Positions 10,538-64,000 of a DNA stretch of 64,000 nt are shown in pieces (positions within the stretch are counted from its first letter, which is position 1; each line of letters begins with the position of its first letter). A model generated the notes under the pieces. It did not search any database. It was not told the DNA's origin and was given only the letters and a program-made list of their open reading frames with translations. Location of the stretch: NCBI GenBank assembly GCA_965649825.1, contig OZ287698.1, forward strand, positions 1,069,949-1,133,948. Direction: 5' to 3'. The DNA is from Penicillus capitatus. Lineage: Eukaryota; Plantae; Chlorophyta. Position numbers and translations under genes: made by a program.

Positions 10538-10606
10538 AAAACTAGTCGAGGAGAAGAAACCTGGATAGAGAGAATAGTCACGCGGATCCTCGGCGCTCGA
10601 GATAAC

Positions 10607-20711: not shown

Positions 20712-20715
20712 CCCA

Positions 20716-28970: not shown

Positions 28971-31900
28971 ATGACGGATGCACGCGACTACGAATGGGCC
29001 GCAATCGGCTATACCGATGACGAGCTCTACGATTTCGCCGAACCGGACCTGTACGACAGTATCTGCGATGTCGGGGTCACCACGGCGACAGGCTTTCGCC
29101 AGGATGACGATCTCGGGCCAAAGCCTCAGTGGGAACACATCGACGAAGGAGCAGGTGTCGATACGTGGGGTCGCCCTGTTCCTCGCGCCCTTCATCCGGC
29201 CACCGATTCAATAAGTGCACTATGGATCCCTTTGCCAAACACGCTCTATGTGGTTTGATCAGTTTTCCAGCAATTCGACGTCGATTTCGTCATCGACGCC
29301 TCGAAGCCTGTCGTGCGCATCTTCGGTGTGAATGATTCCGGTATGCTTGTGAATCTCGGAGACGTTTCTGAGAGTGGCGTGCAGGCAACAGTGTCTGTGC
29401 GTTCGTTCGCGGATTTGAGCCTTACTTCTACATCGAATTGCCACCGGGTTTTACGTCTGGCCACATTCCAGCCTTCAAAGACGAGCTCAAAGTGCGTTTC
29501 TTTCATCGTTTATAGATCTATCGGAGAATCGACGACAGAGACGGGTGAATGCCGATAGCAACCAGACGCATGAGATCACACGCGTGGTGATACAAGAGAA
29601 ATTGAACATCTGGCAATACCAGTTCCATAAACAAACGCAGTTTCTCAAGATCTACACACAACTGCCCAATACCATCTCTGTGTGTCGATCGACTCTGGAG
29701 AATCGATCGTTTGTTGTGAATGATGTGACAGTCGGTCGCTGCCAGACGTTCGAGAGCAATCTCCTCTTTCCCCTCAGGTCCCTCCAGCACATCATGCATC
29801 GCAGCGGATGGTACAGCTGAGCAACAGGTTTATGATCGATTGCGGCATCTCCGGAGGAACCTGGGTCGAGGTACCAGCAGGAAAGTACGCCAGAGTTACT
29901 GGACAGCAGAAACGAACGACATCGCAGATCGAGATCGAACTAGAATATCGCCATCTCATCAATCATCCCCCAGATGGTACCACACCGTCTCTTCAGCACA
30001 GTCATGAGCGAGATCTCTTGTGACAGGAGAGTTTGCGCGTCTGGCACCTTTTCGAATCCTCAGTGTGGATATTGAGTGCGAAGGGCGTAAGGTTCGTGGC
30101 GTTGCTTATCTATGCAAATGATGGGATGGGATGGTGCAGGGCAAGTTTCCCGATCCGGAATTCGATTCTGTCATTCAGATTGCGAGTCGTGTGACATGTT
30201 TGGGCAGTTCCACGTCAGCCGTCAACAATGTTCTCACTCTAAAAGAGTGTTCTCCCATTATTGGTGCTGAAGTCATGTGCTTCGAGAAGGAGACAGATCT
30301 GCTACTGAAATGGCAAAGACTGCTGCGCGTTACCGACCCAGATATCATCATCGGATACAACATCTGCAATTTCGATCTTCCATACCTCGTCAACCGTGCG
30401 AAGAAGCTTCAAATCGACGGTGAATTTGAGTTTTGGGGCCGTATCCGTGCAAGTATATCATCGATTGCATCAATCGCGTTTCCTTTTTCAAAAAGCGCGG
30501 TAGACGCATATCTCTCAGCACTCACGTATCACTTCTAAAACTCAATGTCAACAAAGCCCCCCGACCAAACCCGACCTGGCGAAGACTCCCTCGGTCGATT
30601 TGCGAACAACGCCGACCACTCGTCGCAGTATCGTGTATACCTTCGAGCACGCCTTCACTATCTGCCCTTTCTCAGCAACGCCGCGCTAGCCAATGTCCTG
30701 GAAAAGACCTGCCAGATTGATCCGAGCACTCTTTCCCGTGGTGCACAAGAAGAATCCGTCCGCGCCTACGCTAATGAGACACACCTACGCTTAATTGATG
30801 AAGATTGGCAATTACGCCTGAGTCGAGCACAATCAGAGCAAGAGAAGGCAGTGATTCTACACGAAACAACTTCCGCTCCGCCGTTCCAAAACGAAGAAGT
30901 TCTAAAACGCAAAACGCCAGTAGAATGGAGTGACGAGACGCTAGAATCCTTGGTTATGCATCCGACACGCAGACAGCCCTCAATGTCGCGCCCGGCGACG
31001 CCACCAGTCACGAAAAATGACCTTCCAGTGAAAGGCTTTCCCGCGGTCCTTCAACAAATCAGTAACGAGCTGGAAAAAGACGACACGCTAAAGACTCAAT
31101 TAGTGGGTCTCCTTCAGAACCTATTATCCGGAGTCCAACCACCGAAAAAACTGTTGCAGGAAACCTTGAACGTGCTCACCTCATCGAAGAACAGTATGCA
31201 TGGTCTTAAACTGGGACTCGATCTTAGTATCGAGACCATGAAAGCACACGGCACTCCATGCGTCCAGAGTTCTCTACCTCCGAGAGCACGCGAAAACCCC
31301 AGACCATCTTACGCCAGTATTGCAAGAGCACATGTTCCCGAACCAGTTCGAGCTCCTCCTCGACGACCGACTGCGAGAAATGAACTGGCTGCCATGCGTC
31401 ATGCAATCAGAGACGACGCCAGATCAGTGAAACTGCGATCAGTTAAAGCGGACGGCGCCCGTCCCCCTGGTATAATTGCCAACGCAATCGCGAAGCTTAT
31501 AGATGTCAGCATGCCCACGAATAAGATAGTGGAGGATGTGCGATGCGATTCGCGAGGTACCACATATGTCCAACTATTCACAGAGGGTTTTGAGACAAGA
31601 CTGAAGACACTGCTTAATAAAACCGACTCAAACCAGGTAATCGACCTTGGTGACGCAGGGTACTATACTATGAGCGAACCTACTAAATGCGAAGTAGCGG
31701 GTATGGCTCCTATTGTCATATCAGGGGTCAAGTCGTCGCACAGCCCAGCCCAGATAGCAACAGAAATCTGGGAAATGAACGCGACGAGATGGGGCCTTAG
31801 CAACGAACGGTGCGCACAGCACATCGCTGGTATCTCCCGCCTAAATCGTCGAGTCAGACCACGAGACGGAGAAGACAAATCACCTAATCCAACCTGGGTA

Positions 31901-34900
31901 CCTTCAAAGAGCATCAAAATGTTTGTTTCTAGAGACCTCCTTCGAGCCATGGCCACCCCCGAAGAAAGATACCTGATTCGCTACGAGTATGAATTCCTAG
32001 AGGGCCGCCCGTTCAACAAACCACTCCGAGTCTGCGAAAACTGCGGTACATTGGCGGAACACGACGCCAGAGCATGTCGCCGGCCTCCACGGTGCAACAT
32101 TTGTCACGGAAACCACCGATCAGCTGACTGCAAGAGGAACATCCCCTTTGCCCCTAATATGCCCTCTGGATCTGTTCGAGATACTCCCAGGAGCAAAGCT
32201 AGATCCCCCCTACTGACCAAGACCTCGGGTGAGAGAAGAGAAGCCTTGGTACATGACACGCCCTCCGACTACGGCAGACATAACACAGATGATATGTGCA
32301 TTGACTCGAAGCCCCAAGATGAATGAGTTTCAGACCGACACGAGCCATTGTCCAGTCCCCTCAGATTTACACCCTCTCTACTCTTCCATCAGTAACCCCT
32401 CTCTGCACGAAGCTCGATCTCGATCTCGATCTCGATCTCGATTAACTGTTAGCTCCAACTCTACGCTTACCCTTGATTCACTTTTGATACTACAACAAAA
32501 TGTCAGAGCAAATAAACTGCTTACTGAACTGACCTTGCTCAAACATTCTCCGGATCTTTTCCTTATTTCAGACCCTCCTAAATGTATTAGAGAAGGCTGG
32601 TGCCCCCCAGGCTTTCGATGCGTCCTGCCGCACGGCCACTGTGGGACCGGCCACTGTTGTATCGTTATCAAAGATTACATAGCTTATAACGAAGTTTTCA
32701 CTTCCAGTAACAGAGTTTGCGCACTAACCATTAAAGTTAACTCTCGTTCCATCGGTTTTGTTTGCTGCTATATTCAGCACACAAGTGCTGCAGGTCTTCA
32801 GCACGTTAAAGATACTCATCTTTCTCTTGAGTCCCAAGGAGTATCCTCGGTTATTGGCGGAGACTTTAACTCCCATAGCAGCTTATGGGGCCCGATCTCA
32901 ACACCTACGTGCAATTCTGGACGACAAGTAGAGAATTGGCTCGAACACTCGACACTCAGCCTCCACAATCATTACCCCTGCATCGAAACATTCCGCAACT
33001 CAAGAAATGAACGAAGCTGGATAGACCTTACATGCACATCGGATAGAATTGCCAACTGGATCCAAAACTGGATAGTGACCCGTTGCGATGAAGACCTCTC
33101 CGATCACAACCTGATCAGCTTCAGAATCGTCACAGAGGAAAACGTTAAACTCTCCGATCGCATTCAAGACTGGAGAAACTGCAACTGGGACTCCCTCAGT
33201 CTTTATCTGGAGAGAGACCTTAAAAACGAAGGATGGCTCGACTTCGAATGGGACAAGATAACCACGGGCGAAGAATTGGACACCCGTATCTTGGAACTCG
33301 AAGATGCAATCAGACGCTCAACCAGAAAACTAATCCCCATGAGAAGGAAGACTTCGATGAGGAAACACTGGTGGAATCCGGAACTTACTCGTTTGCACAG
33401 AGACCTCAAAAGAAAACAACGAAGACTCTGGAAACTCACATCAAAAGGCCGCCCTCCAGATGTCCTCGAATCAGCACGAATCGATAGAGATGAGGCGAAA
33501 AAGAATTTTCAAAAAGAGGCCAACGCTGCAAAAACCAAGTCCTGGAGAATTTTTCTCGAAAACACAGATAAAACGAACATGTGGTCCAATTTCAAGCGCA
33601 TCACCAAGCAAAAGAAGAGAGTCGATCTGTCGTATGTCACGGATTTGGAAGACCAAGTCCGGTCTTCCCCCCTGGAGGTGGCCAATGCTCTGGCCGAGAA
33701 ATTCATCCCGGACATTCCAGGAACTTGCTCCCCGACTGAAGCCATGAATGATGACGAACCGATGGTCGCCTCAGACACACTTCTCACAGATCTGCCTATT
33801 GCATTAACGGATTTCCCTGAAGTCACTGAGAGTGAAATAGTCAGAGGCGTATTCGGCAACAAGCCATATGGCGCTGTTGGAATCGACAGAATCCCCAATC
33901 AACTCTACAGGATAGCATTTCCCTTCCTAAAAAGAATGCTATTGGGTATTGTGAACTGCGTACTGAGAACCTCACACCACTGTCATCATTGGAAAACTGC
34001 TGCCGTCGTCGCAGTACCCAAGACCACCCAACATCTTAACTCGGTAAAATCTCTCCGTCCGATCAGTCTGTTGTGTGCCTTAGGAAAAATAGTTGAAAAA
34101 ATCATCACGGACCGTCTGGCACACTGGGCAGAATCTAACATGGTCTTGTCTGACAAGCAGTTCGGTTTCAGGAAGCAAAAGTCTTGCGAGACTGCATTGG
34201 CCAACCTCATTGACAGAGCTGAATCATGCTTCGATCAAGGACAGGACATGCTGGTAGCCTCCCTAGACCTGTCGTCAGCTTTTGACACTATTAATGGCTC
34301 CAAATTACTTTCGAGACTGAGGGACCTGGAAGTCCCTCCGTACCTGCTATCTTGGCTGCAGAACTATGTGAACGATCGCCACTGTGTCATTAAGGTTGCT
34401 GACCAAGAGTTCAGTTACCCAGTTCTCTCGGCCTGCCCACAAGGCAGTCCACTGAGCCCTTTACTGTTCAACCTTTACGTTAACCAAGTTCTGGAGCAGC
34501 ACGAAACTCCCCCCTCTAATACTCCAAGACTCTCTCCCCCTGACGCTCATTCTTCGCAATCCGGCATACAGGCTTATGCTGATGATCTACTGGTGTGGAC
34601 TACAGGTCCCCTGGACACAGAAAACCAGTCTAACCTCCAATCACATCTAGATAAAATCCACCTCTGGACCAAAGAAGCCGGTCTGATGCTAAACCCAACA
34701 AAGTGTGTCACCATCCGACTATCTCGAAAGCGGGGCGGAAGGCCTCCTCTTAAGATGTTGATCGACGGGACGGAACTAGTAGAAAACTCAGTGATCAAGT
34801 ACCTTGGACTCCAGATCGACAGGAAACTCCAATGGCGAGAACACGTCAAATTCGCAGTGCAAAAAGCCAACAAACGACTGCTCACTCTCAGGAAGATTTC

Positions 34901-37900
34901 TGGCCATCGCTGGGGGATTGATTCGACGATCATGGCAAAGCTAGTAAAGATGGGAGTTCTCCCAACCCTTTACTATGCTGCTCCAATCTGGGCCTCCGCT
35001 CGAGCCAATCCTCAAACCCTGCGATCACTGGAAGTGATTACAAGACAACTTGCTCTGATTGTGACAGGATGTCTAAAGACTACAGCCTACGCACCGTGCT
35101 ATGCACTATCTGGACTATATGAACCAGATCTGGAAATCTCTCGCCGCTTAATAGTGTTCGGAAGACGCTTACACTCAATCGAGCGATCCTGCATACAAAG
35201 AACCACAAGGTCACAGTTTCGCCTCAACACGGAAGCAAAAAGAATCGCACGACAACAAGTAACCCCTGACATTCTTCTCTCGCCCAGTCAAATCGCTTGG
35301 GGCATCGCACCTTACGAGTCGAACCTCTGGATTCGACCAGGTAATTCCAAACTTCCATCCTCCCCAAGCGACGGCAAATACTACTGCATCCTTAAGAAAC
35401 TACCAGACTCCCTCTGTTTCGCATGGTCCTGGCGCCATGCTTGTGTCTCACAGGAAGGTTCCTTTGCTTTACCTCTTAGCCTTGAAGAAGATCAAGCTGA
35501 AGCGATCGGCATCCTACTATCGCTGCCTCGCATCTACGCACAAGAAGCCCAAGAATGCAGATATCGATCACCTGACTGTACTCTACAACGCCTCATTCTG
35601 CACTCTAAGAACTCAGGACTTCGGAAATATCTGCTCAAGCTGCAAAACATCCCACGTCTCGCTTACCTGTTGCAGCTATGGATTCGAAATATCCAACTCA
35701 ATGGCATTGAAGTCAGCTGGCTTCGCCCGGATGAATTCTGCGATCTCAGTGCGTGGCGCCGCACCAAGATTATTGCTAAGCAGTGCAACTCGCACCTCCC
35801 GCCTCAAAGATGTGAAGACCCGTCTTCTAGCGAAGGCACTTTGAGTCTTGAGGACCTCTTATCGCTCGCCGGCCTGTGCAACAAGAAGATGAAGAAGATC
35901 CTGAAAGACTACTCGAATGCCTACATGAATGCCACTCTCCTTGCCTCTGACGTCGGTCTTGCCACCACTGACCTGATCAGGATCTGCCCCGACTTCAAGT
36001 TTACTGGAAACTCCTTCCCTGCCCATGGACTTGATCGAACAACTGGCTCCGCCCTGAATCAATTCCTAACTGCCCACATGCCAGCAAACACGTATCTCGA
36101 AAGATTCCAACTGCCCTCTTTTCATAAGATCTGCTGCCACGACCACTGGAATGAACTGGATAACACGACCCATGACTTCAGAGATCATATCCTCATGCAG
36201 TGCGACGACCAGCATATCCAAGCGCTCCGTGTGGCGACCTTCCAAGGAGTCATTCCTCCGTACTCCAGATGTATTACATGGCCAACAGCAATGTCAAACA
36301 TCAACTCTCTGGCAAGTTTCGCAAAGGCCATCCTGAAGATTCCATGGTTTTACCGCCTCAAACAGAACAACACGACTTGGTCGGCAGAAACATCCCAATC
36401 TTGCCTCTCGCTTGATCCGAATGCCGCTTTTGCCAGTTGCATGGAGCATCCATCTACCTCACTGGGTAATAGATCGGCGATGAACTGGCTACTGAGCATA
36501 AGTTAAAAGCCGCCCTGCCCCACCATCAATGCCCTCGGCCATAACCTCCGTCTGAGCCAGATTTACTCGTCATACTGTCAAGGATCGCCCTGCCTGGGGT
36601 AGCTCGTGAGGTAGTCTGGTCTCCATTCGCAACTGACCAGGCTGATTCGGATTCCAAAGATGTGATCTGTCCTTCTTTCATTGTGAAACGAGTCTTTTAC
36701 AACACGTGGTCCTTGTTCAAGTGGCTGATATGCGTTATGCACTGCCACTATAATCCCCTTTAAATGATGATCCGTGCAAGTCGCCTGAAGATGCGCAACT
36801 CCCAATTCAGTTCCAAGGCATACGGCACGCACGAGTACAAAGAGATCAGTGTGGAAGGCCGCGTTCAGTTTGACTTGATGCTGTCCATCCAGAGAGATCA
36901 CAAACTCAGCTCCTACTCACTCAATTCCGTTTCGGCGCACTTTCTGGGGGAGCAGAAAGAAGATGTGCACCATTCGTGTATTACGGATCTACAGAACGGC
37001 AATCCCGAAACACGGCGACGTTTGGCCGTCTACTGCATCAAAGCACGATAAGTGATGTGACAACACCAGTGGACTGACTCTATGGTTATCTAGGATGCAT
37101 ACTTGCCACAGAGGCTGATCGACCGACTGATGTACATGTACAACTATATGGAGATGGCCCGCGTCACGGGTGTCCCTTTCAGTTATCTCCTGACAAAGTG
37201 TCCTCCAGCTTCTCTCCAAAGGGATCGAGCATTACTCTATTTGTGTGATATAGAGGGCAAAGTATCAAGGTCTACTCTCAGCTTTTGAGAAAAGCACGAA
37301 ACAAAGGCATCATCATTCCGAGTCTCAAAGTGCGTGGTGGCTTCTCTCTGTGATGTTGTCGAGATGTGTGTATTCAGTCTGGTGGTCAAACGCAGGGTGT
37401 GGCCTACGAAGGAGCGACGGTGTTAGACGCATGTCAAGGGTACTATGATTCTCCAGTGGCGACACTCGATTTTGCCTCACTGTATCCTTCCATCATGATA
37501 GCTCACAATCTCTGCTACACTACTCTTGTTCCCAAAGACAAGTACAGGCAGCACAAGATGTTTTCATTTTCGATGCATTCCTGTCTGTGCGTGCAGGATC
37601 GCAACGCTCGCTCCCAAGGAGACTGAGATGTCGCCATGTGGAAACGCATTTGTCAAGGCATCTGTGCAGAAGGGTCTATTGCCTGAAGTACTGGAGGAAT
37701 TGCTGGCTGCCAGAAAACGGGCAAAAGCAGATTTGAAGAAAGCCACCGATCCTTTTCAGAAAGCTGTGTTAGATGGTCGCCAACTGGCATTGAAAGTCAG
37801 TGCTAACAGTGTCTATGGCTTCACCGGTGCGACGGTTGGCAAACTGCCATGTCTCGAGATTTCTTCGAGCGTTACTGCCTACGGCCGTGAAATGATCCAC

Positions 37901-39168
37901 CATACCAGACGGCTGGTTCTCAGTCTCTTCAACAGAGACAAAGGATACGAAGCGGACTGTGAGGTCATTTACGGAGACACCGATTCCGTCATGGTCAATT
38001 TCAATGTCCCCAGCATCGAAAGATCGATGGAGTTGGGCAAGAAGGCGGCTGAGGAGATCACTCGGACCTTCCCTCCGCCAGTGAAACTGGAATTTGAGAA
38101 GGTCTACTGTCCTTACCTTCTCATGACAAAGAAGCGATATGCTGGGTTGCTCTGGACACGACCTGAAAAGTACGACAAGATGGACACAAAGGGCATCGAA
38201 TCGGTGAGACGGGACAATTGCTTGCTGGTACGAAGAGTGGTCACGACCTCTCTGGAGAAACTCCTCATTCAACGAGACATTGAAGGCGCCGTGAAATATG
38301 TCAAGGGGACGATCTCTGATCTGCTGATGAACCGATTGGATCTCAGCGAACTGGTCGTGTCCAAAGTGAGAGATCTCTTGGCGAGTGGGCAAGGCAACCG
38401 TGTGCGTTTAGGGACTGTCGAGAGACGCCGGAGACTACGAGACCAAGATTGCACACGTCGAGCTGGCAAAGAAGATGCAGAAGCGCGATCCGGCTACCGC
38501 ACCAGGTGCGTCTGTCCCTCGCCTGCCCAGGCCGTCGATCGATGCTGCGAAGGGATCGGCGATCGGGTGCCATATGTCATTATCAAGGCTGCCAAGGGCG
38601 CAAAGGCGTACGAGAAGGCAGAGGATCCCATCTTTGCACTGGAACACAACCTGCCGATCGACTTCCAGCACTACGTCGATCACCATCTGTCGCAGCCGAT
38701 CGTTCGGATCTTCGAGCCCATTCTGAAGGAGAGAGTCAAGGAGCTTCTCAACGGAGAGCACACCCGAAGCGTCATTGTCTCGACGCCGTCTGCCGCCTCG
38801 GGAGGCATCATGAGATTCGTCAAGACCCGTCCCAAGTGCTTGGGATGCAAAGCGCCGTTGGACGAAGGGTTCGCCACGCTCTGCAAGCACTGCGAGCCCG
38901 ACATGCCGCGAATCTACGTCGACCATCTCGCCAAGTGGGATCCACCTTGTGCGAGACATCCATCGATCGGCAGCCGTGCCGTTCTAGGGTGAATGACCTG
39001 GAAGACATGTTCGGTCGACTGTGGACACAATGTCAGACCTGTCAGGGCAGTATCATGCAGGAGGTGCTCTGCACCAATCGAGACTGTCCGATCTTCTACA
39101 GGAGAAAGAAGGTGCGCAAGGATCTCAACGACGCCCACAAGAACCTCGTCAAATTCAACGACGCATAA
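28971..39168 (+). CDS. POLD1: DNA polymerase delta catalytic subunit, interrupted in a coding exon by LINE B
   Basis: WGRP...FQQ N-terminus; ExoI DIEC, Exo[10 protein letters not shown], ExoIII LAVYCIKDA; Pol motifs [18 protein letters not shown] and YGDTDS; CysA (CLGC..CKHC) and CysB (CQTC..C..DC). Confidence 0.95.
30545..32326 (+). CDS. LINE B ORF1 (Gag-like, two zinc knuckles)
   Basis: 593-aa ORF with [15 protein letters not shown] and [13 protein letters not shown]; shares a domain with LINE A ORF1. Confidence 0.9.
   Translation: MSTKPPDQTRPGEDSLGRFANNADHSSQYRVYLRARLHYLPFLSNAALANVLEKTCQIDPSTLSRGAQEESVRAYANETHLRLIDEDWQLRLSRAQSEQEKAVILHETTSAPPFQNEEVLKRKTPVEWSDETLESLVMHPTRRQPSMSRPATPPVTKNDLPVKGFPAVLQQISNELEKDDTLKTQLVGLLQNLLSGVQPPKKLLQETLNVLTSSKNSMHGLKLGLDLSIETMKAHGTPCVQSSLPPRARENPRPSYASIARAHVPEPVRAPPRRPTARNELAAMRHAIRDDARSVKLRSVKADGARPPGIIANAIAKLIDVSMPTNKIVEDVRCDSRGTTYVQLFTEGFETRLKTLLNKTDSNQVIDLGDAGYYTMSEPTKCEVAGMAPIVISGVKSSHSPAQIATEIWEMNATRWGLSNERCAQHIAGISRLNRRVRPRDGEDKSPNPTWVPSKSIKMFVSRDLLRAMATPEERYLIRYEYEFLEGRPFNKPLRVCENCGTLAEHDARACRRPPRCNICHGNHRSADCKRNIPFAPNMPSGSVRDTPRSKARSPLLTKTSGERREALVHDTPSDYGRHNTDDMCIDSKPQDE
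32319..36506 (+). CDS. LINE B ORF2 (APE endonuclease, RT, RNase H-like domain, C-terminal Cys/His motif)
   Basis: [29 protein letters not shown]; [22 protein letters not shown]; C-terminal CCH...DHILMQC. The ATG at 32319 overlaps the ORF1 stop. Confidence 0.92.
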   Translation: MNEFQTDTSHCPVPSDLHPLYSSISNPSLHEARSRSRSRSRLTVSSNSTLTLDSLLILQQNVRANKLLTELTLLKHSPDLFLISDPPKCIREGWCPPGFRCVLPHGHCGTGHCCIVIKDYIAYNEVFTSSNRVCALTIKVNSRSIGFVCCYIQHTSAAGLQHVKDTHLSLESQGVSSVIGGDFNSHSSLWGPISTPTCNSGRQVENWLEHSTLSLHNHYPCIETFRNSRNERSWIDLTCTSDRIANWIQNWIVTRCDEDLSDHNLISFRIVTEENVKLSDRIQDWRNCNWDSLSLYLERDLKNEGWLDFEWDKITTGEELDTRILELEDAIRRSTRKLIPMRRKTSMRKHWWNPELTRLHRDLKRKQRRLWKLTSKGRPPDVLESARIDRDEAKKNFQKEANAAKTKSWRIFLENTDKTNMWSNFKRITKQKKRVDLSYVTDLEDQVRSSPLEVANALAEKFIPDIPGTCSPTEAMNDDEPMVASDTLLTDLPIALTDFPEVTESEIVRGVFGNKPYGAVGIDRIPNQLYRIAFPFLKRMLLGIVNCVLRTSHHCHHWKTAAVVAVPKTTQHLNSVKSLRPISLLCALGKIVEKIITDRLAHWAESNMVLSDKQFGFRKQKSCETALANLIDRAESCFDQGQDMLVASLDLSSAFDTINGSKLLSRLRDLEVPPYLLSWLQNYVNDRHCVIKVADQEFSYPVLSACPQGSPLSPLLFNLYVNQVLEQHETPPSNTPRLSPPDAHSSQSGIQAYADDLLVWTTGPLDTENQSNLQSHLDKIHLWTKEAGLMLNPTKCVTIRLSRKRGGRPPLKMLIDGTELVENSVIKYLGLQIDRKLQWREHVKFAVQKANKRLLTLRKISGHRWGIDSTIMAKLVKMGVLPTLYYAAPIWASARANPQTLRSLEVITRQLALIVTGCLKTTAYAPCYALSGLYEPDLEISRRLIVFGRRLHSIERSCIQRTTRSQFRLNTEAKRIARQQVTPDILLSPSQIAWGIAPYESNLWIRPGNSKLPSSPSDGKYYCILKKLPDSLCFAWSWRHACVSQEGSFALPLSLEEDQAEAIGILLSLPRIYAQEAQECRYRSPDCTLQRLILHSKNSGLRKYLLKLQNIPRLAYLLQLWIRNIQLNGIEVSWLRPDEFCDLSAWRRTKIIAKQCNSHLPPQRCEDPSSSEGTLSLEDLLSLAGLCNKKMKKILKDYSNAYMNATLLASDVGLATTDLIRICPDFKFTGNSFPAHGLDRTTGSALNQFLTAHMPANTYLERFQLPSFHKICCHDHWNELDNTTHDFRDHILMQCDDQHIQALRVATFQGVIPPYSRCITWPTAMSNINSLASFAKAILKIPWFYRLKQNNTTWSAETSQSCLSLDPNAAFASCMEHPSTSLGNRSAMNWLLSIS

Positions 39169-39229
39169 ACGTGTCGCGCTTTCACACAAGGAACCCATGC
39201 GCGCGAGTGATGTAAAGAAGCCAGAGACG

Positions 39230-40991
39230 TCAGAGAAGCCATGGCTTGTCCGCCCTTGGCTTTCTCTTGAAGATTTTCGTCACTCTCTTCGACAGCGAAT
39301 TGAATTTTTGGATCGTCTCTTCAAAACGGCGATCCGTTCGAACCTCTGCCAAGTCTGGATCGCTGCGCAATGTCTCGAAGTCTTCAAACTCCAAATCCAG
39401 CAGCGCTTCGAGACATGTCATGGCGCTGTCCATTTCTCCAAGCTTCCCATAGCAGCAGACGATGTTGTACAGCGCCGCGTGTTCTTCACTCTGACTCGGT
39501 CCGCTGAATTCCGTCGCCTGTCCGGCGTAACGAAATCTGCCCTCGCCTGAAAGCCACCTCGTTGACAGCATGGACAGACACGTCCTCTATTCTTACCCGG
39601 CAGTTCAAGAGAGGCGTTGAAAGCATCGAGTGCTTCTGAATAGCGTTGCTCTTGAAATCTCTCCAGGGGCATCATCTTTCAGGAGCTGCATGGCAGTGAC
39701 CGGGGCACCATAGAATCTCCCGTTAAGTTTGGAGCGTACAGAAAGGAGTGTTCCATCCAGAGAGGCGCCAGCATAAACTTTACGGCAGAAACAGAACCCC
39801 GTGGCCCGAGACACTCGTGTCCCTTCTGCGCTGCCCACCTAACACGGCAGTATAGAAGACGTCGTCTCCCGATGCGATGTTATTCCCACCCGTAATGTAA
39901 TGGAGTGCTGGAATCCGGGTCCTACTCCGAGAGAGGCACTTACCCCTCCATTCAACCCAATTTGCGTCTCCCCTGGAATGATAGATGCTTGTCGGATGAA
40001 AGCAGAGAGAGACCTACCTGTGAATGCGTTAATGGATTCGGGTGTGGACAACAGGATGACGGAATCCATCAGTTGCCCTCCGATCTGCAATCCTGCGCCG
40101 AAGCTGGCAGAACTCAGTGAACAGGGTCGACCCCAGTGCCGCTCGCTACCCACCCTCGACAGCACGAGTCCTTTGGAGCAGGACATGCTCTCGGGTATGA
40201 AAGTGCATCTACTGCACGTTACCTGTCCCGAATCGGCAGGAACTCACACCGAATGCCACTTTGAGCTCGGAGAGAACGACAATGCCCTCTGTTGAATTGA
40301 GGAGATCCTCTGGCACCACTCCAGGGACACTGAGCACTAACTGGCAGGACAGAAGTGTGAAAATGTGTACGCTCGCAAGCGTGTCATCACAGAAACATCG
40401 CCACTCAAAATCAATGTGTCAACGCCTTCCGTTCGTTTCGCTTCACTCCAAGGCGATCAATAGTTTCCCCCTAACGGTCTGCAACGCTCGTACACACGCC
40501 GTTGTCGCATCCATGACGTCGCATCTGTCGAAAGGCGAACGACATCCGTCAGGCACTGTCTGGTGGTGCTTTTTGCCCTGGACTCTGGATTGTTGCGATG
40601 CCGGTTATCCGATCGCGCTCTTTGCGTCCATACATCCCAACCCGCACGTACATACACATGTACTCGACGGCAAACCGTTGTTTGTACATCCATGCGGTGA
40701 TAGACACAGTTCTCAACCGTACTGTCTCTTGTCCTCGTTCGGGGTGGTGGTCTCGGTGACGATGGGTTCGTCGCAGTCCAGCATGAACGCGCGTCGCAGC
40801 TTGAGCTCTTTCTTCAGTGGCTGTTCATCGACGGACGAGTTGCTTTTCAAATGGAATGCCCCGCTTGACGAGGCATTTCTAGAAAAGGAAAACTCAGAAG
40901 TCCTCTGTATTAAGGCAGCAGCCAAACTGCGTTTAAGAAACGGCTCCAGCGTGGGATGCGACTGTCTGCGTTGCGCAAAGAGAATGCTCAT
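39230..40991 (-). CDS. SYLF/Ysc84 (DUF500) domain protein, apparently joined to a C-terminal TPR (MET1/TEF30-like) region
   Basis: SYLF segments: VPEDLLNSTEGIVVL..KVAFG, GLVLSR, GAGLQIGGQLMDSVILL, YAGASLDGTLL..NGRFYG. TPR segments: ERFQEQRYSEALDAF, ALYNIVCCYGKLG, LRSDPDL. The frame between them is offset by 1 nt at G4 39666-39669. Start is approximate. Confidence 0.6.
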
Positions 40992-41042: not shown

Positions 41043-41576
41043 TTGGTGCTGGGCGGATTCGAGGACGTCGACTTGACGCTCGACGGGGAGTTATCGGATC
41101 GCTGTGGCGTTCGTGGCGATCGGATGCCATTGGATCCTGCGAGTTATCGAAAAATACAGCAGGAAGTCGAATCTCTCAAGAGAGAAAACAGCAGGCAATG
41201 GATCACAGATGTCATCATCATGCCTTGCGATGTTTTTGCGATTGGTAGGTTATCTCGAACATTGTGTGAAATGGATGCCCAGGCGGCAGATCTGGTGGCC
41301 CAATGTTCAGCAGCGTTGCAAGACAACAATGCGCAGCTGCGTGCTGCACATCAGTTGGCGTCAGAACTGAGTGGCGTTGTCGAATGCCTGAAGGAAGACG
41401 CGCAGAAAAAAGCAGATCTGATAACGGAACTCAAGGTGGAGAAGGATCTACTGAACGGCCGTTTGGAAGCAGCACTGGACGAGATCTACAGAACAACGGG
41501 AAATTCGACGTGCACTGTGCGAGAGCGGCTGCCTATGATGCCAACATCTCCTCAGTGTCCCGGAGATTTCAGTTAG
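41043..41576 (+). CDS. Hypothetical short coiled-coil protein
   Basis: Heptad-rich C-terminal half (QLRAAHQLASELSGVVECLKEDAQKKADLITELKVEK). Exon structure unresolved. Confidence 0.35.
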   Translation: MVLGGFEDVDLTLDGELSDRCGVRGDRMPLDPASYRKIQQEVESLKRENSRQWITDVIIMPCDVFAIGRLSRTLCEMDAQAADLVAQCSAALQDNNAQLRAAHQLASELSGVVECLKEDAQKKADLITELKVEKDLLNGRLEAALDEIYRTTGNSTCTVRERLPMMPTSPQCPGDFS

Positions 41577-52855: not shown

Positions 52856-54991
52856 TCACGATGCAAACAAGATCTCCGTTCTCTTCGGACGCTGTTCGAT
52901 CGTTCCAGGTTTAACAGCCGCCTTCGGATGCCTTGACAACTCTGCCGGGACGGTCGCCTTGCCGTCTTCCAGAACCTTCTTCAGATCATACAGCACAGGA
53001 TGCTCTGGCTCAGCCAGCGTCAAGAATGTCAGGGCCACTCCTTTTCTTCCAGCGCGACCCGTTCTGCCGATACGATGCGTGTACATTTCAATGTTGAACG
53101 GCATGTCGTAGTTGATCACCAGAGCCACATCCGCCACGTCGATACCTCTGCCAGCGACGTCCGTCGCGATGAGGATGTTGTAGGTGTCGTCACGGAATCC
53201 CTTGATGCTTGCTTCGCGCTGCTCCTGCGTCTTGCCTCCGTGCAGGACAGTGCAGCTGAATCCCATGCCTTCCAGCCGGCGATAGACGACATCGCACTTG
53301 CTCTTGGTGTTGACAAACACGATGGCGCGTTTCTCGTTGAGGGCCTCCATCTCCTGCTCCAGTCGCAGTTCCTTCTCGTTCTCTTTCATGATGATGACGC
53401 GTTGCGAGACGTTGTCCGTTGCTCGGCCGGCCGTGCCGACAGTCACGATGACGGGTCTCCGCAGGTACTTCTTTGCCAGACGCTCCACGGCCGTCGGCAT
53501 TGTCGCGCTGAACATGTGCGTCGTGCGGTAGACGCGCGCCGTGTCCTCCACTTCCTCGTTCTCCGGCTTCAGATTGCTGCTGGGCATCGCATCGAGCACG
53601 CCGACCACTTGCGGCTCGAACCCCATGTCGATCATCCGATCCGCCTCGTCCAACACAACGTAGTTGCACTGATTCAGAACAGCGTAGCGCCGTTCGAGGC
53701 AGTCGATCAGACGACCGGGTGTGGCAATCACGATCTCGCATCCCCTTCTGAGCTTGAACCCCTGGTCTTCGATGGACTGCCCACCAACGACAGAGCAGAC
53801 GCGATAGTCGGTGTAGTGTCCCAGCCTGCCCGTCTCTTCCTCGATCTGCTGCGCCAGTTCGCGGGTGGGCGCCAGGATGACGGCGTAGGGACCGTCCGAT
53901 TCGTTTGCCTCCGTCATCGGCGGTTGGTTCATGACGTAGACCATCAAGGGCAAAACGAACGCGGCCGTCTTTCCAGAGCCCGTTTCGGCGATGCCTATCA
54001 GATCTCGCCCCTTCACGCCCACAGGAATGGCTGCCATCTGAATCGGAGATGGCTTCTTGAATCCCATCCTCCGAATCGCCTTCTCCAGCGGAACAGGCAA
54101 GTCTGCCTCCTCCCAGTTTCGTATCGGCATGGCAGGGGTGCTGCCGCTGCCTTTGTAGGAGATGCTGAAATCTTCTTTGCAGATCCTCCAGTCGCGATCC
54201 GTCATCGCCTCGAGCGGCTTCTCGGACCAGTGCCGCTCGCTCCTCATATCTCTGATGTGATACAGATCGGCCTCCTTCTCGCGCTCTTTGTTCAGCTTAC
54301 GGGAACCATGCGTCTCCTTCAGTCCCGCTGCGTGGCGCGAAGACTTCAGCAGTCCGATCTCCCGGACGGTTGCTTCCTTCTTCTGCTCTCTCCGATCCAT
54401 GCCTGCCCTCATCCCCCTGCCAAAGAGCGGAGCCGCTTCGTGGGGATTGTTGTACAGCGGGTTCAGATCTCGCGAGGTGTCATCGCCGACGTCCCAATCG
54501 AAGTTGAAACGAAACTTCTCGCTCGGCTTCAGCACACGCTTCTTCACTTTCTCCTGTCCCAGGTACTGCTGCTTGATCAGGACGAGCTCCTTCTCCCGTT
54601 CGCGCTCTCGATCGTCGGTCTGGGAATGATGATGCGCGCGGCGTTCGTTTGAATGGACGGCGGCGGTGTCGTCGACAGTCGAACGCGTTTCTTCCTCGAC
54701 GGGCACGTGACGACGCGTCGCTGTCACCTCGTGTTGCTTCAGGGCAGCTTCCTCTCTCTGCTTCTTCGTCATAAACACCGGTCGCTTTGCCGCATCCTGC
54801 GCTGCTTTGGTCTTCTTCAGCACCTCCTCGAGGGACAGCGGCTCTTTTCGCTTCTTCTCGGGAGGAGGGGGCAGCGCCTCGCCCGATTCGACAGACGACG
54901 CCCGGTCCTGCTCGCGAAGGTCTCGTCGTCCCTGACGCTCGGCACTGCGCGAACGGCGACGCTTATATTCGATGCCATTGGAGCGATACAT
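52856..54991 (-). CDS. DDX23: DEAD-box spliceosomal RNA helicase PRP28, single exon
   Basis: [39 protein letters not shown]; 711-aa uninterrupted ORF. Confidence 0.97.
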
Positions 54992-55026
54992 CTTCGCGCA
55001 ATTCCCGAACCGCTGTGGCCATTATC

Positions 55027-57865
55027 ATGGTTTCCGAGCAGTGGGTGTTTCAAGCGATTGCTGCCGGCAAGACATACGACAGTCTGCCCACGCGCATCAA
55101 GAACACGCTCTCCTTCACCGAATGGAAAAACAAGTGTGCCCAGAATCCACTGCGCACCGCACTTTCGAGTTCTGTCGCAAAACAGAGTGAAGCATTATTG
55201 CATACAACACGGATACGCATGGGCAGATAGCGTTGCCAACACGAGTGGTGGAGAGCAGGAGTACTACGAAGAGCTGCTCGACTATTACAAGAAGAACGAG
55301 AGGGTGAGCCGCAAGCCTATTGGGTATTCGGGATTCATGCCCACTGGACAATGTGTGATACGGCAGTTGTTTCCGTATCACTTGGCGCACTACGTGTGTC
55401 GGATCTTGAGAGTGACCGCCTTCCGCTACTACTCGGACATCCTCTTCAACAGCCTAAAAGAGGAGAAGGCCTACGACAAGATACCCAACTTCACGGTGCT
55501 CGGAGAATGAAGAGGTGGAAGTGCGAGAGAATGTGTGATGTGACCTCCAGGCAGCCGACATTTTGCGACATCTGGGGATCGGAAGAAACGAGTACATCTC
55601 GATCCTCGATGCTTGTCGGGCCAAAAAGTTCATATGGCGCATGAACCGGAACATTGCCAAAGAGCGGCTGCCGAACGAGCCCGTCAGCATGGTCATGGAG
55701 CCGTGGTGGAGAATCGGTGTGGTCAACGTAAGCGCATTCGACGCGGAAATCTATCCCCGTCTCAACGTCCTCTCGTCAGTTGACAGAGAGCGAGTTCAAG
55801 GCGCTGATGCCGGACGAACTGGAATTCCTGCAGCTGGCTTCTTCGGGCGACAACTCGCTGAGCTTGGCTGAAGTGAACTACGAGATTCTGCGGTCTCTTT
55901 ATCGCCGAGGCCTTCTCTACCTCCGCATTCCGATAAGAGAAGATGACAAGTTTACGATCCCGCCCTTGGAAGTCGGGCATTCTCGACAGGTGCGATTCGG
56001 CTAGAGTGACGGACTCCGCTGTAGGGCTTTATCTCGAATCGCAATGTCTCTTCGACGAGCGTGGGAGTGGATCCCATGGAGACGCTTCTGTACTCTGTGT
56101 TCATCGCCAACAGCGAGAACATGACGCTGAGTTCTCTCGCCGACGTCTTGAACGTCGACATCTCCGCGCTCAAGGCGGCAATGGGCATCGCCGTGCGACT
56201 CGGTTTCGCCACGCGTGTTGCACGCGATTCAGGCGAGCACTCGTGCACTGCTGATCGAATGCGTTGCTCCAATGCACGGCTGCTTTGCCAGACGGCGGGT
56301 CGACCGCCTCTTTTGACGGTCTCCAGATTCGCGATAACGAAGATGAGGAGGAGAACGAAGCAGACCGTTCAGCAGGGAAAGCTCTGTTCCCGACCGGCGA
56401 CGCCTCTTCCGGCGACGTTCAGTCCATCGCTGTGCTTGTCGACGCTGAAACGACATCCTTTCTGATGATGGGTCTCCTTTCCTCCGGTAAAAACCGCGAG
56501 ACTGCAAAGAGCGAAGTCCTACCCTGCAGGGATCAAACGCCATGCCGTGACTCTCTTCGAGGGAGGACGGGTAGCGGGCGACGAGGTGATCTCGCATCTG
56601 ATCTCGGAGCTGCGAACCTCCGCCGACGTCAAAGAACAGGACGAGGAGATCCGGAAGCTGATGCAAACGGCATCGTCCCTTGCCGAGCTGCTCGAGTGTG
56701 TCAAAGAAGCGTCTGGCAATGGGTCCATCGAGCTCCTGAGAAGGTCCATCTCCCCTTTCTGTTCTCATCGATCTCCGTCGTTTCCAGAGAGTCGTTGGAG
56801 GGGCTGTCGAGTGAAGCGGTGACGCGGATTCTGTCGCACAGCTACAAAGCCATCGTCCCCATCGCGCCACTTTCGGGAGATCCCCTTCCCTTGAGTGCCA
56901 CGGAAGCATCTCCGCTCTTCTTCGGAGCAACGGACGCCGTCGCATCGCTGTGGTTTCAGCTCGCGTGCTTCGAGCACTGCGGCAGCGGTCCGATCTCTCA
57001 CGTCTTTGTTCGGGGACAGGTATGCCCAATCCTCGGCGCATTCCACCATCCACGACGCTGGTGTGCTGCAGAGAGTGACGCAACTGCCTCGAGCCATTCG
57101 AGGTCACTCCTTTGCCCTCCTCTTTTCCTTTCCCTTCTGCAAGGCGCCGCACCTCGTGACGTTTCCCTTCATCCTCCACCACCTCAACGAACTCTGTCGC
57201 CACGGACACGTGCTGCTGCAGCCTCTCTTCGTCGAGGCGAACAGACAGGACGACGTCAACAGGGTCGACGATCTGGAATTCGTTGACGTTCCCCTGCCGA
57301 TCGCCACACATCGGAGACCAGACGATGGATCCCTCGTCGCGCAAGGTACACCGCACGCCGCGCGTGGCCTTTGGCGCTTCATCCGCCACCCGTTTGCCTG
57401 CCAGGCTACGTTCGGGGCAGCGGCAAAGCCGTCGAGATTTCCATTGTGCCGACGTTGCCTGAGATGCTCGTGCGTCTGGGTCTGACCCACGTGACAGGGT
57501 TCATGCGCTTCTCGCCTAACTGCACGGCGTCGCACGAGTATGTACCCTTTCACGTATACCTCGGCGTGCCTCTGACGCCCCTGGCTCTGTGCAATGCCGT
57601 CTGTGCGAGCACAAGGGAACAGAATCTCTTCGACGCGGACAACGTTGAAGGCGTCATCGAAGACAAACGGCGCCATGTGCAGATCGTGACGCACGTCCTA
57701 GAGAGATTCGGTCATGATGGAAGAGGCCTGGCACCGCAGACCGGATTCCTCTTCGACGGGCACAAGCTGCGATCGGACGAATACGCGACATCAGATCTAC
57801 TGCTCGCGCCTCTTTCAAAGTCGGCGACACCCACAAAACACGAGTCCGCTGTCGCGATCGAATAG
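55027..57865 (+). CDS. FAM91A1: FAM91A1-like protein
   Basis: LFPYHLA.YVCRILRVTAFRYY, YDKIPNFT, LGIGRNEYI, DPMETLLYSVF, SFLMMG.LS, HAVTLFEGG, YVPFHVYLGVPL..L...VC. Confidence 0.9.
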
Positions 57866-57933
57866 TCCTTGAGTTTTGGACCGCCTGCAAAAATACCATC
57901 CCGGGCGAGCATTGACTTGTGTTGCATCTCGTC

Positions 57934-59969
<2,036 letters not shown>

Positions 59970-60226
59970 CCGATGTGAATCGCGCTTGACGGAGACGCTT
60001 GCCGGGTTAATGGGCTAGGAAGTTCCTCTGACAGCTGCGTCTCACTCTCTATCTAGTGTATTACCTACTGCTACGAACACGCCCGCAACAACAGCGACAC
60101 GACTCGAACTGACACACAATATATACTCTTTCTATTCTTCAACAACACATCGGAATTCATCTGATATTAAAACGGTGAAGGATGTGCTCAGATGTTCGAG
60201 ATGAGAGTGAGATGGGTGCTTAGGAT

Positions 60227-62004
60227 ATGGCAGCGACTGCTTTGCGTGTGAAAGGGAAAAGGAATGACGGGGGTCTGGCGCCGCCGCCTCCACCGCCGCC
60301 GCGTGCACCTTTTCGACGAACGTACCCTGTAGCACCTCTGGGAAGAAAATGGCTCAAAATAGATGCAGAGGGGAATTCGCAGATCATGGCCACCGACCGA
60401 CACCGACTGACGCACGAACTGGGCGTCCAGACGCGCGATCTGAGGATACTGGACCCAAAGTTCTCGACGAACTATCCATCTGCCATCCTGTGCCGGGAGA
60501 ATGCGCTGGTCGTGAATCTGTTGCATATCAAGGCGATCCTGACGACCGAATACGTACTGATCATGGATCCCGAAACGCAGGATGGAGAATTGGATCCGTT
60601 TGTGAAAGAGCTGGAGAATCGTCTGAGCCACAACGACTTGATGGCATCAGCTTCATTCCCTGTTCTGAGCAATTACTTGGGACAGAAGAAAACGGGCAGG
60701 ACAAAAGAGGTCGAATTTTCATTGTTCGGTGGAGATCACTCACTGCAGCGCTCTGCAGAACACGACCGGCAGGGAGACGGCATCCGGAGAGATACGACCT
60801 GGTGCGGTCAGACTGGATCATCGCGTAAGTGGCATGGAATGACTGAAGAGGAGTGATGGAGTGATGTAGGCGGAGAATGGAAACGACGAGGGAGGCAATG
60901 GAAGCAACGCAGGACTGCGCAGCTCGCCACCCGTGATGCCCTTTGAGTTGAAGGCGCTCGAGGTCTGTCTGGAGTCTGTAAGAACGCTGAGATGCGCGAA
61001 CAGATCGCGATCGAATCTGTGGTTGGCAGGTCTGCAAGATTCTGGATTCGAATGCCACTCAACTGGAGGGGACGGCCTTTCCAGCCATCGACGATCTGAC
61101 GCTGAACGTCTGTCCTATCCAATCATCAAGAGACAGGTCCGAGGAAGAGCGCGCATGGGTTTCTAGGTCAACACCAAAAACTTGCATCGAGTGAGGACCG
61201 TCAAGAGCAAGATTGCGCAACTCAAGACGCATGTCGAAACGGTCAAGGAAGTCTTGGAGAAATTCCTCGACGACGACGAAGACATGAGGGACATGAATCT
61301 CACTGCCAAACAGATGCATCGCTCTCAGACCCACAACTTCGATGCGATCATCAAGGTACAGTCGCGCAGCTTCACTTCACTCCTTGCCTTGAACGACGGG
61401 GCAGAGCGGTGACACCTTTGCGGAGTTTGAACATGATTCCACTTTCAGACCGCCTCCGTCGCCAGGATCTTCGGTCTCCACAAACTCCTCTGTCTTCGAT
61501 GAGGAGGTGCAGGAAGTCGAGATGTTGCTCGAGGCATACTTCATGCAGATCGATCACATTTTCAACAGGTTTCCCAGCATCCTTCTTCCACCGTGAATGC
61601 CGAAGATTCAGGTTGCTGACGCTTAATGAGTATATCGACGACACGGAGGATTTTATCAACATCGTTCAAGACAAGCACAGAAATCAGCTTCTGCAGGTCG
61701 AGACGTGCCATTCCAGCCTTTCTGGATGCCGTTGTGGATCTAGCTCGATTTGCTCATCGCAGCAGGGACGTTTGCTCTAACGATGGTCGCTGTCGTTTCG
61801 GGGATCTTTGGAATGAACTTAAACAACACCTTCTCCGAGACGTCGCCAACGCCTTTCCTCCTCGTATCCTGCACAAGCATTGCCATGAACCCATCCATCT
61901 CACTTCTTGTGTTCAAGGTCACATGTCTGTCACTGGCAGTGGCGTTGATTGTGCTGGGAATCATTTTATGGTTCTGTCGTCTGAAGGGGTTGATGAATAT
62001 CTAG
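60227..62004 (+). CDS. MRS2: MRS2/CorA-family magnesium transporter
   Basis: RDLRILDP..YPSAIL.RENALVVNL, PFELKALEVCLE, EMLLEAYFMQID, EYIDDTEDFINI and the GMN motif (GIFGMNL). Confidence 0.93.
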
Positions 62005-63040
62005 GAGGACGCTCATGGCAACGACGCGCAGTTTAATAAGATACCTATCATGACTAGCAAGACATTGAGTATCTCTGTAGCGGATATCTATTTCTTTAAA
62101 ATAACCTATGGCGCACACCGGTCATCATCGTCTTCGGCATTTGTTTAATGCAGAACGATTGTTCGTTGATTTGTTAGGACCGAGGGGTGTCGCGAGAGGT
62201 ATGAGTGCGTCGAGGCCACGAGTAGAGACGAATCAGACGGGTATTGTTACAGGTGAGTCTGTACATCGTTATACGGGTAAACGTCCTGTCAGTCGACACT
62301 GACGTTTCTTGATCGAACAGATTCAAAAACAACGACAGTCGCGTTTGTCTGCGCTTTGTCCGACGTGTTTACGTCTACGTTTGTGTTGCGTTTGTCGACG
62401 AAGGGCTATACGATGTATGAGTGTTCTGTCCATCTCTCGGCCGTTCTAGACTGCGAACGCTTTTCCTTCTAATTTTACTATCTGTTCTACGTATGTTTGG
62501 CTTAAGGACAACGAAGTCACGGAACTTCTGGCTACATTTGGAAGAAGCAAATCAGGCACAACACGCACCCGACGTCTGGCATTTCCGCAAACCATTATAT
62601 GCGGTGTAGCGCTAAACGAAATTGTTGGAAATGTAGCGTCCTATCCGTCGTTCGTAGCCGTCGGAAGCGGTTCGATGTTAGAGTAACCACCTTGGCGCGC
62701 TGACCACCAGCTGCGACGGGTGTTAGCCTCCGAGCCAACTTCCTCATAACGATAGAGGGATGGTTTCCGAACGTGCCTTGAAGTTCGCGACTGTTAGTGC
62801 TTGGGTTAGAAAGCTCTCAACCACCGTGGATATTTAAGACCGACATTTCTGTTGTAATTGTCCTCGAGTTCGTGTGCTATCGTGTAAGTGTTCATTTGGC
62901 GTCGTCATTCGTGCGTTTTCGACTCAGCACTTCCGCAATCCGTTACATCGACCCCACAAGAAATCATCCTTTTAGAAGACATCGTGAGGCCGTCCGAAAG
63001 CAAAGCGGAAGTTCGTCTCATCGTGATAAATCTTCCATCG

Positions 63041-64000
63041 TATGGAGCATTCATTGCCGTTTAGCGTTCGCGTGTTCGTCTAGTCTCCAACCCTTGCTGT
63101 TCATATAATGGATGCACGTGACCAAGAATGGGCCGAAAACGGCTATGTCGATGACGATTTGCTCCAAGCCTCAGTGGGAATTGTCGGGAATCGAGTAAAA
63201 TACTGGAAAAAACTCGGAGTAGAAAAACACGCGACGACGATGATAGAATGCACTCAAACGATATCACCAAGAACTCGAGATAAATTACAGGGAGAATGCC
63301 CCCTTTTAATACCTTTAATAGTCAAAGGTTCGCTAACCTTTGCCTCCGCCAGTAAAACTGGAATTTGAGAAGGTCTACTGTCCTTACCTTCTCATGACAA
63401 AGAAGCGATATGCCGGGTTGCTCTGGACACGACCTGAAAAGTACGACAAGATGGACACAAAGGGCATCGAATCGGTGAGACGGGACAATTGCTTGCTGGT
63501 ACGAAGAGTGGTCACGACCTCTCTGGAGAAACTCCTCATTCAACGAGACATTGAAGGCGCCGTGAAATATGTCAAGGGGACGATCTCTGATCTGCTGATG
63601 AACCGATTGGATCTCAGCGAACTGGTCGTGTCCAAAGTGAGAGATCTCTTGGCGAGTGGGCAAGGCAACCGTGTGCGTTTAGGGACTGTCGAGAGACGCT
63701 GGAGACTACGAGACCAAGATTGCACACGTCGAGCTGGCAAAGAAGATGCAGAAGCGCGATCCGGCTACCGCACCAGGTGCGTCTGTCCCTCGCCTGCCCA
63801 GGCCGTCGATCGATGCTGCGAAGGGATCGGCGATCGGGTGCCATATGTCATTATCAAGGCTGCCAAGGGCGCAAAGGCGTACGAGAAGGCAGAGGATCCC
63901 ATCTTTGCACTGGAACACAATCTGCCGATCGACTTCCAGCACTACGTCGATCACCATCTGTCGCAGCCGATCGTTCGGATCTTCGAGCCCATTCTGAAGG
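63041..64000 (+). pseudogene. POLD1: Mosaic partial duplicate of POLD1 (runs off the window)
   Basis: 63041-63180 is a diverged, internally deleted copy of 28905-29135. 63343-64000 matches 38082-38739, including two introns, with 4 substitutions. Confidence 0.9.

Follow-up and report, generated by a model that had tools for sequence, protein, structure and literature searches.

The 64,000-nt stretch of Penicillus capitatus DNA analysed here (the window) carries POLD1 sequence at two places 25 kb apart: a whole gene at locus A (copy A, 28971–30454 plus 36782–39168) and, at the right-hand end, a copy that has lost all of its catalytic motifs but differs from the first, inside the window, only at synonymous positions (copy B, at locus B). 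The question that this pair raises is whether copy B is an expressed fragment with a role of its own, a pseudogene kept similar to its parent by sequence exchange, or an artefact of assembly. Most likely copy B is an ordinary pseudogene under concerted evolution and not a new regulator.

Sequences compared

The window is eukaryotic, with GT-AG introns of 42–53 nt, one LINE and one LTR retrotransposon, and its genes include RAB3GAP2, POLD1, NPC1, CDK5RAP3, DDX23 and MRS2. The best named matches of its POLD1 (68%) and DDX23 (59–69%) are from green algae and then land plants, and environmental relatives reach 81–87% identity. The source contig of the window is ctg340422_42x_l (635 kb) of the metagenome assembly ENA ERZ25074695, on which the reading was extended 9.4 kb past the window edge; the extended segment, L002, corresponds to window 53108–73368 and is identical to the window across the overlap. 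The same assembly contains a further contig, ctg340486_42x_l (1.02 Mb), which matches the window with 99.64% identity over 53108–64000 and 99.1–99.3% over 23677–48996 and is taken to be the other haplotype or a very close strain. Segments L002 and L003 represent locus B, and L005 and L006 locus A, on these two haplotype contigs; the two alleles of each copy are called A1 and A2, and B1 and B2, below. A related cDNA-like contig, L007, whose POLD1 protein is 87% identical, was used as the outgroup. We note that L003 ends at its position 14340 (L002 14344), so that ctg340486_42x_l stops 11 nt after locus B regains homology to locus A; this contig was probably broken by the assembler at the repeat, and the FYVE-SYLF gene of the second haplotype (see below) is therefore unseen.

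The POLD1 3' fragment of copy B

The 3' fragment of copy B (63343–64000, plus strand) comprises the end of the palm, the thumb and the start of the C-terminal domain, where it is cut by the window edge. It pairs with 38072–38729 of copy A, whose matching part continues on the plus strand to the POLD1 stop codon (38072–39168), and the direct repeat that the two copies form (63340–64000 and 38069–38729, offset 25271) is 99.24% identical. A first-pass annotation of the window had recognised this repeat but had placed its copy A partner 10 nt too far to the right, at 38082–38739, where a comparison with copy B looks random. Both introns of the fragment that lie in the window, of 46 nt (63637–63682, plus strand, identical to 38366–38411) and 47 nt (63777–63823, plus strand, identical to 38506–38552), are retained base for base, as that annotation had it. 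A processed pseudogene (retrocopy) was considered and is rejected because of these introns. The splice model of the fragment is supported by the L007 cDNA, which aligns to it gap-free over 315 codons. In the 3' part of copy A the longest open reading frame is 37526–38992, for which the start chosen by the gene caller is ATG 37628.

Copy B begins 31 residues after the YGDTDS of motif C (37970–37987 in copy A), in agreement with the earlier observation that the fragment starts just after this motif and has no Exo domain and no polymerase motifs A to C. The features that mark a functional family B delta polymerase, Exo I–III, motif A (DxxSLYPS), motif B (KxxxNSxYG) and motif C (YGDTDS), are all absent from copy B, and tblastn searches with three POLD1 proteins cover copy B in the window with only their C-terminal ~190 residues. 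Extension past the window edge, which had been suggested as a way to look for the CysA and CysB motifs and the stop codon, found all of them: on L002 copy B runs through a third intron to the POLD1 stop at window-equivalent 64437–64439 with its spliced frame intact, and the C-terminal domain on the source contig is complete, with all CysA/CysB cysteines. The spliced frame of the 3' fragment is intact to the stop on both B haplotypes. Its predicted product aligns to residues 787–1099 of the 1107 of human POLD1 (PDB 6S1M chain A), a region that consists of the palm end, the thumb and the CysA/CysB C-terminal domain.

Four substitutions separate the copies in 63343–64000 (B/A: 63354 A/G, 63414 C/T, 63700 T/C and 63921 T/C), and all four are synonymous third-position changes (GTG>GTA, GCT>GCC, GCC>GCT and AAC>AAT, respectively). 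The chance that four of four would be synonymous is P = 0.003 if any substitution is allowed and 0.015 if only transitions are. The claim that copy B has nothing but synonymous changes thus holds inside the window, but it fails past the edge, where two non-synonymous differences lie: an R>C change (CGT>TGT, window-equivalent 64099) two residues before the first CysA cysteine, and a G>V change (GGG>GTA, 64139–64140) within the CysA loop. Each change is fixed, being present on the two B haplotypes, and since L007 has the copy A state at both positions they are probably derived in B. The "only synonymous" pattern is therefore an effect of where the window happens to end.

Over the whole comparison copy B differs from both A alleles at nine fixed sites (eight events), with five synonymous and two non-synonymous differences in coding sequence and one in the 3' flank; for five of seven coding differences to be synonymous by chance, P = 0.009 for any substitution and 0.05 for transitions only. 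The two A alleles differ by six synonymous and no non-synonymous coding changes and by four changes in the flank, and the two B alleles have no coding differences, differing only in intron 3 and the flank. Half of the eight fixed events are CpG/TpG differences, with TpG in B in three cases and in A in one, a pattern of ordinary mutational decay in both copies. The 87%-identical L007 cDNA gave no usable polarity for the synonymous differences, its third positions being 49% identical and near saturation.

The 5' relic and the junction

Upstream of the fragment, in the same orientation, lies a decayed relic of the POLD1 5' UTR, start codon and first ~17 codons (63041–63157, plus strand). It matches the 5' UTR, ATG 28971 and first codons of copy A (28905–29023, plus strand) with 80% identity over 119 nt (E = 9e-24), and it is identical in the two haplotypes. 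The 185 nt of filler between relic and fragment (63158–63342, plus strand) are probably degenerate exon-1 sequence: a permissive local alignment of the filler with copy A is not significant (z about 1.4 against shuffles), and a single exact 15-mer, 63166–63180, is shared with POLD1 exon 1 at 29121–29135. Copy B reads this 15-mer in a different frame, which implies a frameshifting deletion of ~89 nt in exon 1. The stretch that copy B lacks altogether starts at about codon 19 and reaches 31 residues beyond motif C, some 2.7 kb of gene sequence.

The reading frames at this junction are closed. An 86-aa open reading frame begins at the relic ATG (63108–63368, plus strand), and it had been thought to stay open across both junctions; it crosses only 63342/63343 and ends at TGA 63366–63368, out of frame and 26 nt into the POLD1 fragment. 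The POLD1 frame itself is closed by TAA 63334–63336, two codons before the junction, with more stops upstream. That removal of G63342 would produce an in-frame fusion is arithmetically correct. Homology to copy A extends 5 nt further left in a shifted register (ACCTT, 63336–63340 = 38066–38070), so that copy A reads ACC TTC CCT and copy B ACC TTT G CCT; G63342 is a 1-nt insertion, and this extra base in the shifted register is the reason that the fragment looked one nucleotide from being in frame. The inserted G and the junction around it are identical on both haplotype contigs.

The 86-aa frame has no homologue among 5.8 billion proteins except itself on the two haplotype contigs and no credible Pfam hit, the small open reading frames of the 1.3 kb upstream (62100–63370) contain no credible Pfam domain, and neither an Rfam nor a tRNA scan of the junction region gave a hit. 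There are 64 GT-AG pairs of any size that would restore the frame, one of them 49 nt long (63321–63369), and by our estimate about one frame-restoring pair of 42–53 nt is expected by chance; these pairs cannot be scored, since splice donors in this genome are degenerate. Copy B has structural features of an unprocessed pseudogene: its homology to the parent includes introns (the third beyond the window edge) and flanking DNA, and it carries disabling lesions, namely the ~2.7 kb deletion, TAA 63334–63336, the G63342 insertion and an upstream reading frame that ends out of frame.

Extent of the duplication and the neighbouring genes

Homology between the loci does not end with POLD1. It continues at 98.9% identity over 38069–39666, reaching 498 nt past the POLD1 stop, is interrupted by 2,503 nt that are present only at locus B (L002 11831–14332), resumes for 705 nt (39666–40370 with L002 14333–15037) and then ends abruptly; the block common to both loci is 2.3 kb. 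The shared 3' flank of POLD1 (39169–39665, minus strand, 98.9% identity to 39666) contains the 3' end of a TPR gene, the whole of which is found at locus B alone (TPR_8 match at L002 11394–11735), and the 705-nt segment (39666–40370, minus strand, 96.6% identical to L002 14333–15037) is an internal fragment of a FYVE-SYLF (Ysc84-domain) gene.

At locus B the minus strand carries the TPR gene, whose open reading frame (L002 11582–12259) crosses into B-specific DNA, a coiled-coil open reading frame and the FYVE-SYLF gene. The latter has its FYVE domain at L002 15285–15956 and matches Ysc84 profile positions 2–46 and 71–126 of 127 at L002 14218–14853, and its reading frame ends at 14218, inside B-specific DNA. 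At locus A the TPR 3' end is fused at 39666 to the SYLF fragment, the match to the Ysc84 profile stops at position 112 of 127, and the window contains no FYVE domain. A look-up of 39230–39571 returned only the window's own contig. The TPR and FYVE-SYLF genes thus appear to be native at locus B, with relics of them at locus A, and for POLD1 the case is reversed: locus A has the whole gene and locus B the 5' relic, the filler and the 3' third.

Divergence between the copies

The segments of this one duplication differ sharply in divergence. The 5' relic of B and its counterpart in A differ at 24 of 119 sites (20%), the POLD1 3' parts at 0.9–1.4%, the 3' flanks at 0.6–1.0% and the SYLF parts at 3.7–3.8%; the contrast between the relic and the POLD1 3' part is highly significant (Fisher P = 9e-18). 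The introns and 3' flank are as alike as the exons, so selection cannot explain it. By comparison, divergence between the two A alleles is 0.55% for the POLD1 3' part and 0.80% for the 3' flank. Low, patchy divergence between paralogues, together with raised allelic diversity within the repeat, is a signature of interlocus gene conversion (PMC3924837, PMC3966223, PMC4467073), and the sharp steps found here (20% vs 0.9–1.4% vs 3.7%) are of the kind that gene conversion leaves.

The SYLF relic of locus A (39666–40370) shows signs of the second part of this signature. Its two alleles differ by 3.26%, against 0.15–0.9% in the flanks, and their 23 allelic differences fall in blocks: B1 agrees with A2 at 39678–39828 and with A1 at 39893–40219. 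The mosaic comprises five runs among the 23 sites (permutation P = 0.0008, for one 705-nt segment and three sequences). In the POLD1 part and its flank (38072–39665, three to four sequences) the mosaic is not seen, and the variable sites fit the simple tree ((A1,A2),(B1,B2)); for the POLD1 part alone, a single recent conversion or repair event would fit as well as repeated events. Of the readings that the first-pass annotation had put forward, gene conversion or ectopic repair onto an old pseudogene gives the best fit, with an 80% identical 5' relic beside a 99% identical 3' part and a mosaic in SYLF, and interlocus gene conversion is the process that we infer to have homogenised the two loci.

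History of the locus and alternative explanations

Copy B is probably an unprocessed, internally deleted POLD1 pseudogene that lies in an old segmental duplication and has had its 3' tract homogenised by exchange; it would extend from 63041 to about window-equivalent 68144. Its structure and boundaries are shown directly, as are its occurrence on the two haplotypes, the unequal divergence of its segments and the closure of its reading frames. The original duplication would have been ~7.6 kb long and would have contained POLD1, the TPR gene, the coiled-coil open reading frame and part of the FYVE-SYLF gene. Decay of the two loci would then have been complementary, locus A keeping POLD1 and losing 2.5 kb of the neighbouring genes, and locus B keeping the neighbours and losing POLD1 from ~codon 19 to 31 residues past motif C. 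The remaining block (A 38069–40370, B 63340–68144) probably still exchanges sequence between the loci, through gene conversion or recombinational repair at ectopic sites, which would hold its divergence at the level of allelic variation. The 5' relic, cut off from the block by the deletion, would have drifted to 80% identity and so would record the age of the duplication. Synonymous-only differences would be expected where a POLD1 under purifying selection was the recent source of the tract or serves as its reference in the comparison, and they are, on this reading, no evidence of selection on copy B itself.

Because the FYVE-SYLF gene is truncated at A by the right-hand breakpoint, the simplest view would make locus B the parental site and locus A the daughter copy. 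In a distant relative (L008, POLD1 64% identical) MRS2 is ~2.1 kb from POLD1 with one gene between them, and in the window MRS2 adjoins copy B, a proximity that fits weakly with locus B as the older POLD1 site. A search of JGI metagenomes for close genomic POLD1 relatives found 64% identity at best; POLD1 synteny was informative only for L008, the contig of another candidate (L090) ending too near DDX23. The closest relative with context, L088 (a Logan SRR33785046 contig, DDX23 81% identical), has no POLD1 beside MRS2 and none in the 22 kb compared. Its gene order is DDX23–JmjC–MRS2, followed directly by a gene X and NPC1, unlike that of the window, in which X (41280–41555), NPC1 and CDK5RAP3 precede DDX23...MRS2 (40371–63040). 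The L088 junction between MRS2 and X corresponds to the left edge of copy B plus the right edge of copy A, which hints that the duplication and the block swap relative to L088 may share breakpoints. A tandem duplication with random loss that would link the two events was considered and rejected: divergence between the two species is much greater than that of the 5' relic, and the flanking sequences expected under such a model were not seen.

Three other explanations have to be weighed against this history. The 2.3-kb block might have passed from one locus to the other in a single recent accident of replication or repair, without conversion continuing thereafter, and the 80% relic might be an unrelated older remnant or a hypermutated junction. 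The simple tree of the sites in 38072–39665, in which B lies outside the A alleles, and the sharp homology boundaries at 63340, 39666 and 40370 agree with such an event. However, the shared 3' flank and SYLF segment belong to genes that are continuous into B-specific DNA, so the POLD1 tail at B is contiguous with native sequence and not newly inserted; the 5' relic is in the right order and orientation only 185 nt upstream of the fragment; and the 3.7% divergence, mosaic and 3.26% allelic divergence of SYLF are unlike one clean recent event. We consider single copying unlikely. An assembly artefact, in which an allelic POLD1 tail ended up beside MRS2 through a haplotig or chimeric join, can draw on the metagenomic origin of the window sequence and on the end of one of the two contigs 11 nt past the repeat boundary. 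Against it, both haplotype contigs carry both loci in the same order, 25 kb apart and with an identical junction, the nine fixed sites (eight events) set copy B apart from both A alleles, unique genes flank copy B to the left and to the right, and the names of both contigs state a depth of 42x. The haplotype misjoin that had been listed earlier as an option is refuted by these two independent contigs (0.36% apart, one with and one without the LINE), each of which has loci A and B, and an artefact of any such kind is scarcely credible.

The third explanation, also listed earlier, is that copy B is an expressed decoy or regulator: transcription from the retained POLD1-like promoter, followed by splicing, reinitiation (at the first in-frame Met, LLMTKK) or frameshifting, would yield a thumb plus CysA/CysB polypeptide without catalytic activity, able to bind the B subunit or PCNA. 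The spliced 3' frame, intact to the stop on both haplotypes, the relic promoter/5' UTR and ATG, the span of the fragment over the whole C-terminal domain (human POLD1 787–1099) and the existence of frame-restoring GT-AG pairs, one of typical intron size (49 nt), would all suit it, and the excess of synonymous differences (five of seven; P = 0.009, or 0.05 for transitions only) could mean some constraint on B. This excess would be expected if the differences originated in the selected A lineage or were taken over from it, though for the synonymous changes the CpG>TpG argument points the other way; at ~1% divergence an intact frame is expected in any case. The frame-restoring pairs are at about their chance number. 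The POLD1 frame has a stop two codons before the junction and no in-frame start, the upstream frame ends out of frame and its 86-aa product has no homologue, and, with three introns downstream of the stop, an mRNA would be a target of nonsense-mediated decay. Moreover, the R>C and G>V changes adjoin CysA and are probably derived in B. With no in-frame start, the stops, the orphan 86-aa frame and the two non-synonymous changes, the decoy has no positive support; we consider it very improbable, and copy B is probably not expressed. A shade more improbable is the further speculation that copy B is transcribed from the relic promoter and, by way of a short cryptic intron or reinitiation, gives a thumb plus CysA/CysB protein, lacking the polymerase, that would be a competitor for the B subunit of Pol delta, or else that copy B persists because repair of the 3' third of an essential gene can use it as a template close by. 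The consequences of a decoy, if real, would be greatest in a cell in which one POLD1 allele is already inactivated by a LINE, like the allele described next.

A LINE in the coding sequence of copy A

On the window haplotype only, a coding exon of copy A is interrupted by a full-length LINE (30455–36769, plus strand) with ORF1 and an ORF2 that encodes an APE endonuclease and a reverse transcriptase. It is flanked by a 12-bp target-site duplication, ATCCGTGCAAGT, at 30443–30454 and 36770–36781, it has no poly(A) tail, and the POLD1 residues RLKMRNSQF resume after the insertion. The other haplotype has an empty site with an intact POLD1 frame (L006 ~9143–9154). The earlier description of a LINE-disrupted POLD1 copy 25 kb away is thus accurate for the window haplotype and does not apply to the other. 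The insertion is exonic and heterozygous, so the window haplotype is without an intact POLD1; the LINE itself is probably recent and active. That an essential replication gene is carried as a heterozygous LINE-null allele is the most notable by-product of this analysis.

Comparison with known systems

In humans, PMS2CL is inverted and lies roughly 0.7 Mb from PMS2, whereas the POLD1 copies are direct and 25 kb apart. Further differences are that copy B keeps a decayed 5' end, that its partner locus carries reciprocal gene fragments, and that the host is a green alga. Like copy B, PMS2CL nevertheless retains only 3' exons and the introns that belong to them and shares a chromosome with its parent gene, and it is a 3'-only duplicate of a DNA-repair gene that is homogenised by sequence exchange (PMC3398144). 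PMS2/PMS2CL is the closest counterpart of the POLD1 A/B pair. The low, patchy divergence of older duplicates, raised allelic variation and mosaic alleles that are known from concerted evolution by interlocus conversion (PMC3924837, PMC3966223, PMC4467073) have parallels here in a comparison of two haplotypes, the last two in the SYLF segment.

Copy B also resembles other unprocessed pseudogenes, and the pair other cases of reciprocal loss, in its retained introns and flanks, its disabling deletions and the complementary gene subsets of the two loci. If locus B is parental, the working POLD1, unlike in the usual reciprocal-loss case, sits in the daughter copy, and the gene would have been relocated by duplication and loss, as gene-continuity arguments and one distant syntenic hint suggest. 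On this account the locus is a natural example of the reciprocal decay of a segmental duplication in which a 5' relic records the age of the event while the rest is probably kept young by exchange. It also calls for caution, in that synonymous-only differences and an open frame in a recently converted fragment, being inherited from a selected donor gene, say nothing about function. Existing knowledge of Pol delta and of gene conversion is unchanged by copy B.

Other features of the window

A tandem duplication at 4268–5823 and 6738–8298 (period ~2.47 kb, 88% identity) contains an FMO-like monooxygenase open reading frame (5138–5968). The LTR retrotransposon occupies 8963–20872 between 157-nt direct repeats (8963–9119 and 20716–20872, 98% identical); its coding region is broken into several open reading frames, with the reverse transcriptase at 13971–15560 and the integrase at 20007–20723, and an 85-nt tandem duplication (19968–20137) lies inside it. 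The two haplotypes are only 92% identical, with 28 gaps, between 22113–23624 and L006 862–2391, and L006 1–861 gave no megablast alignment to the window, so the haplotypes may differ in structure close to the H-lectin genes and the LTR element.
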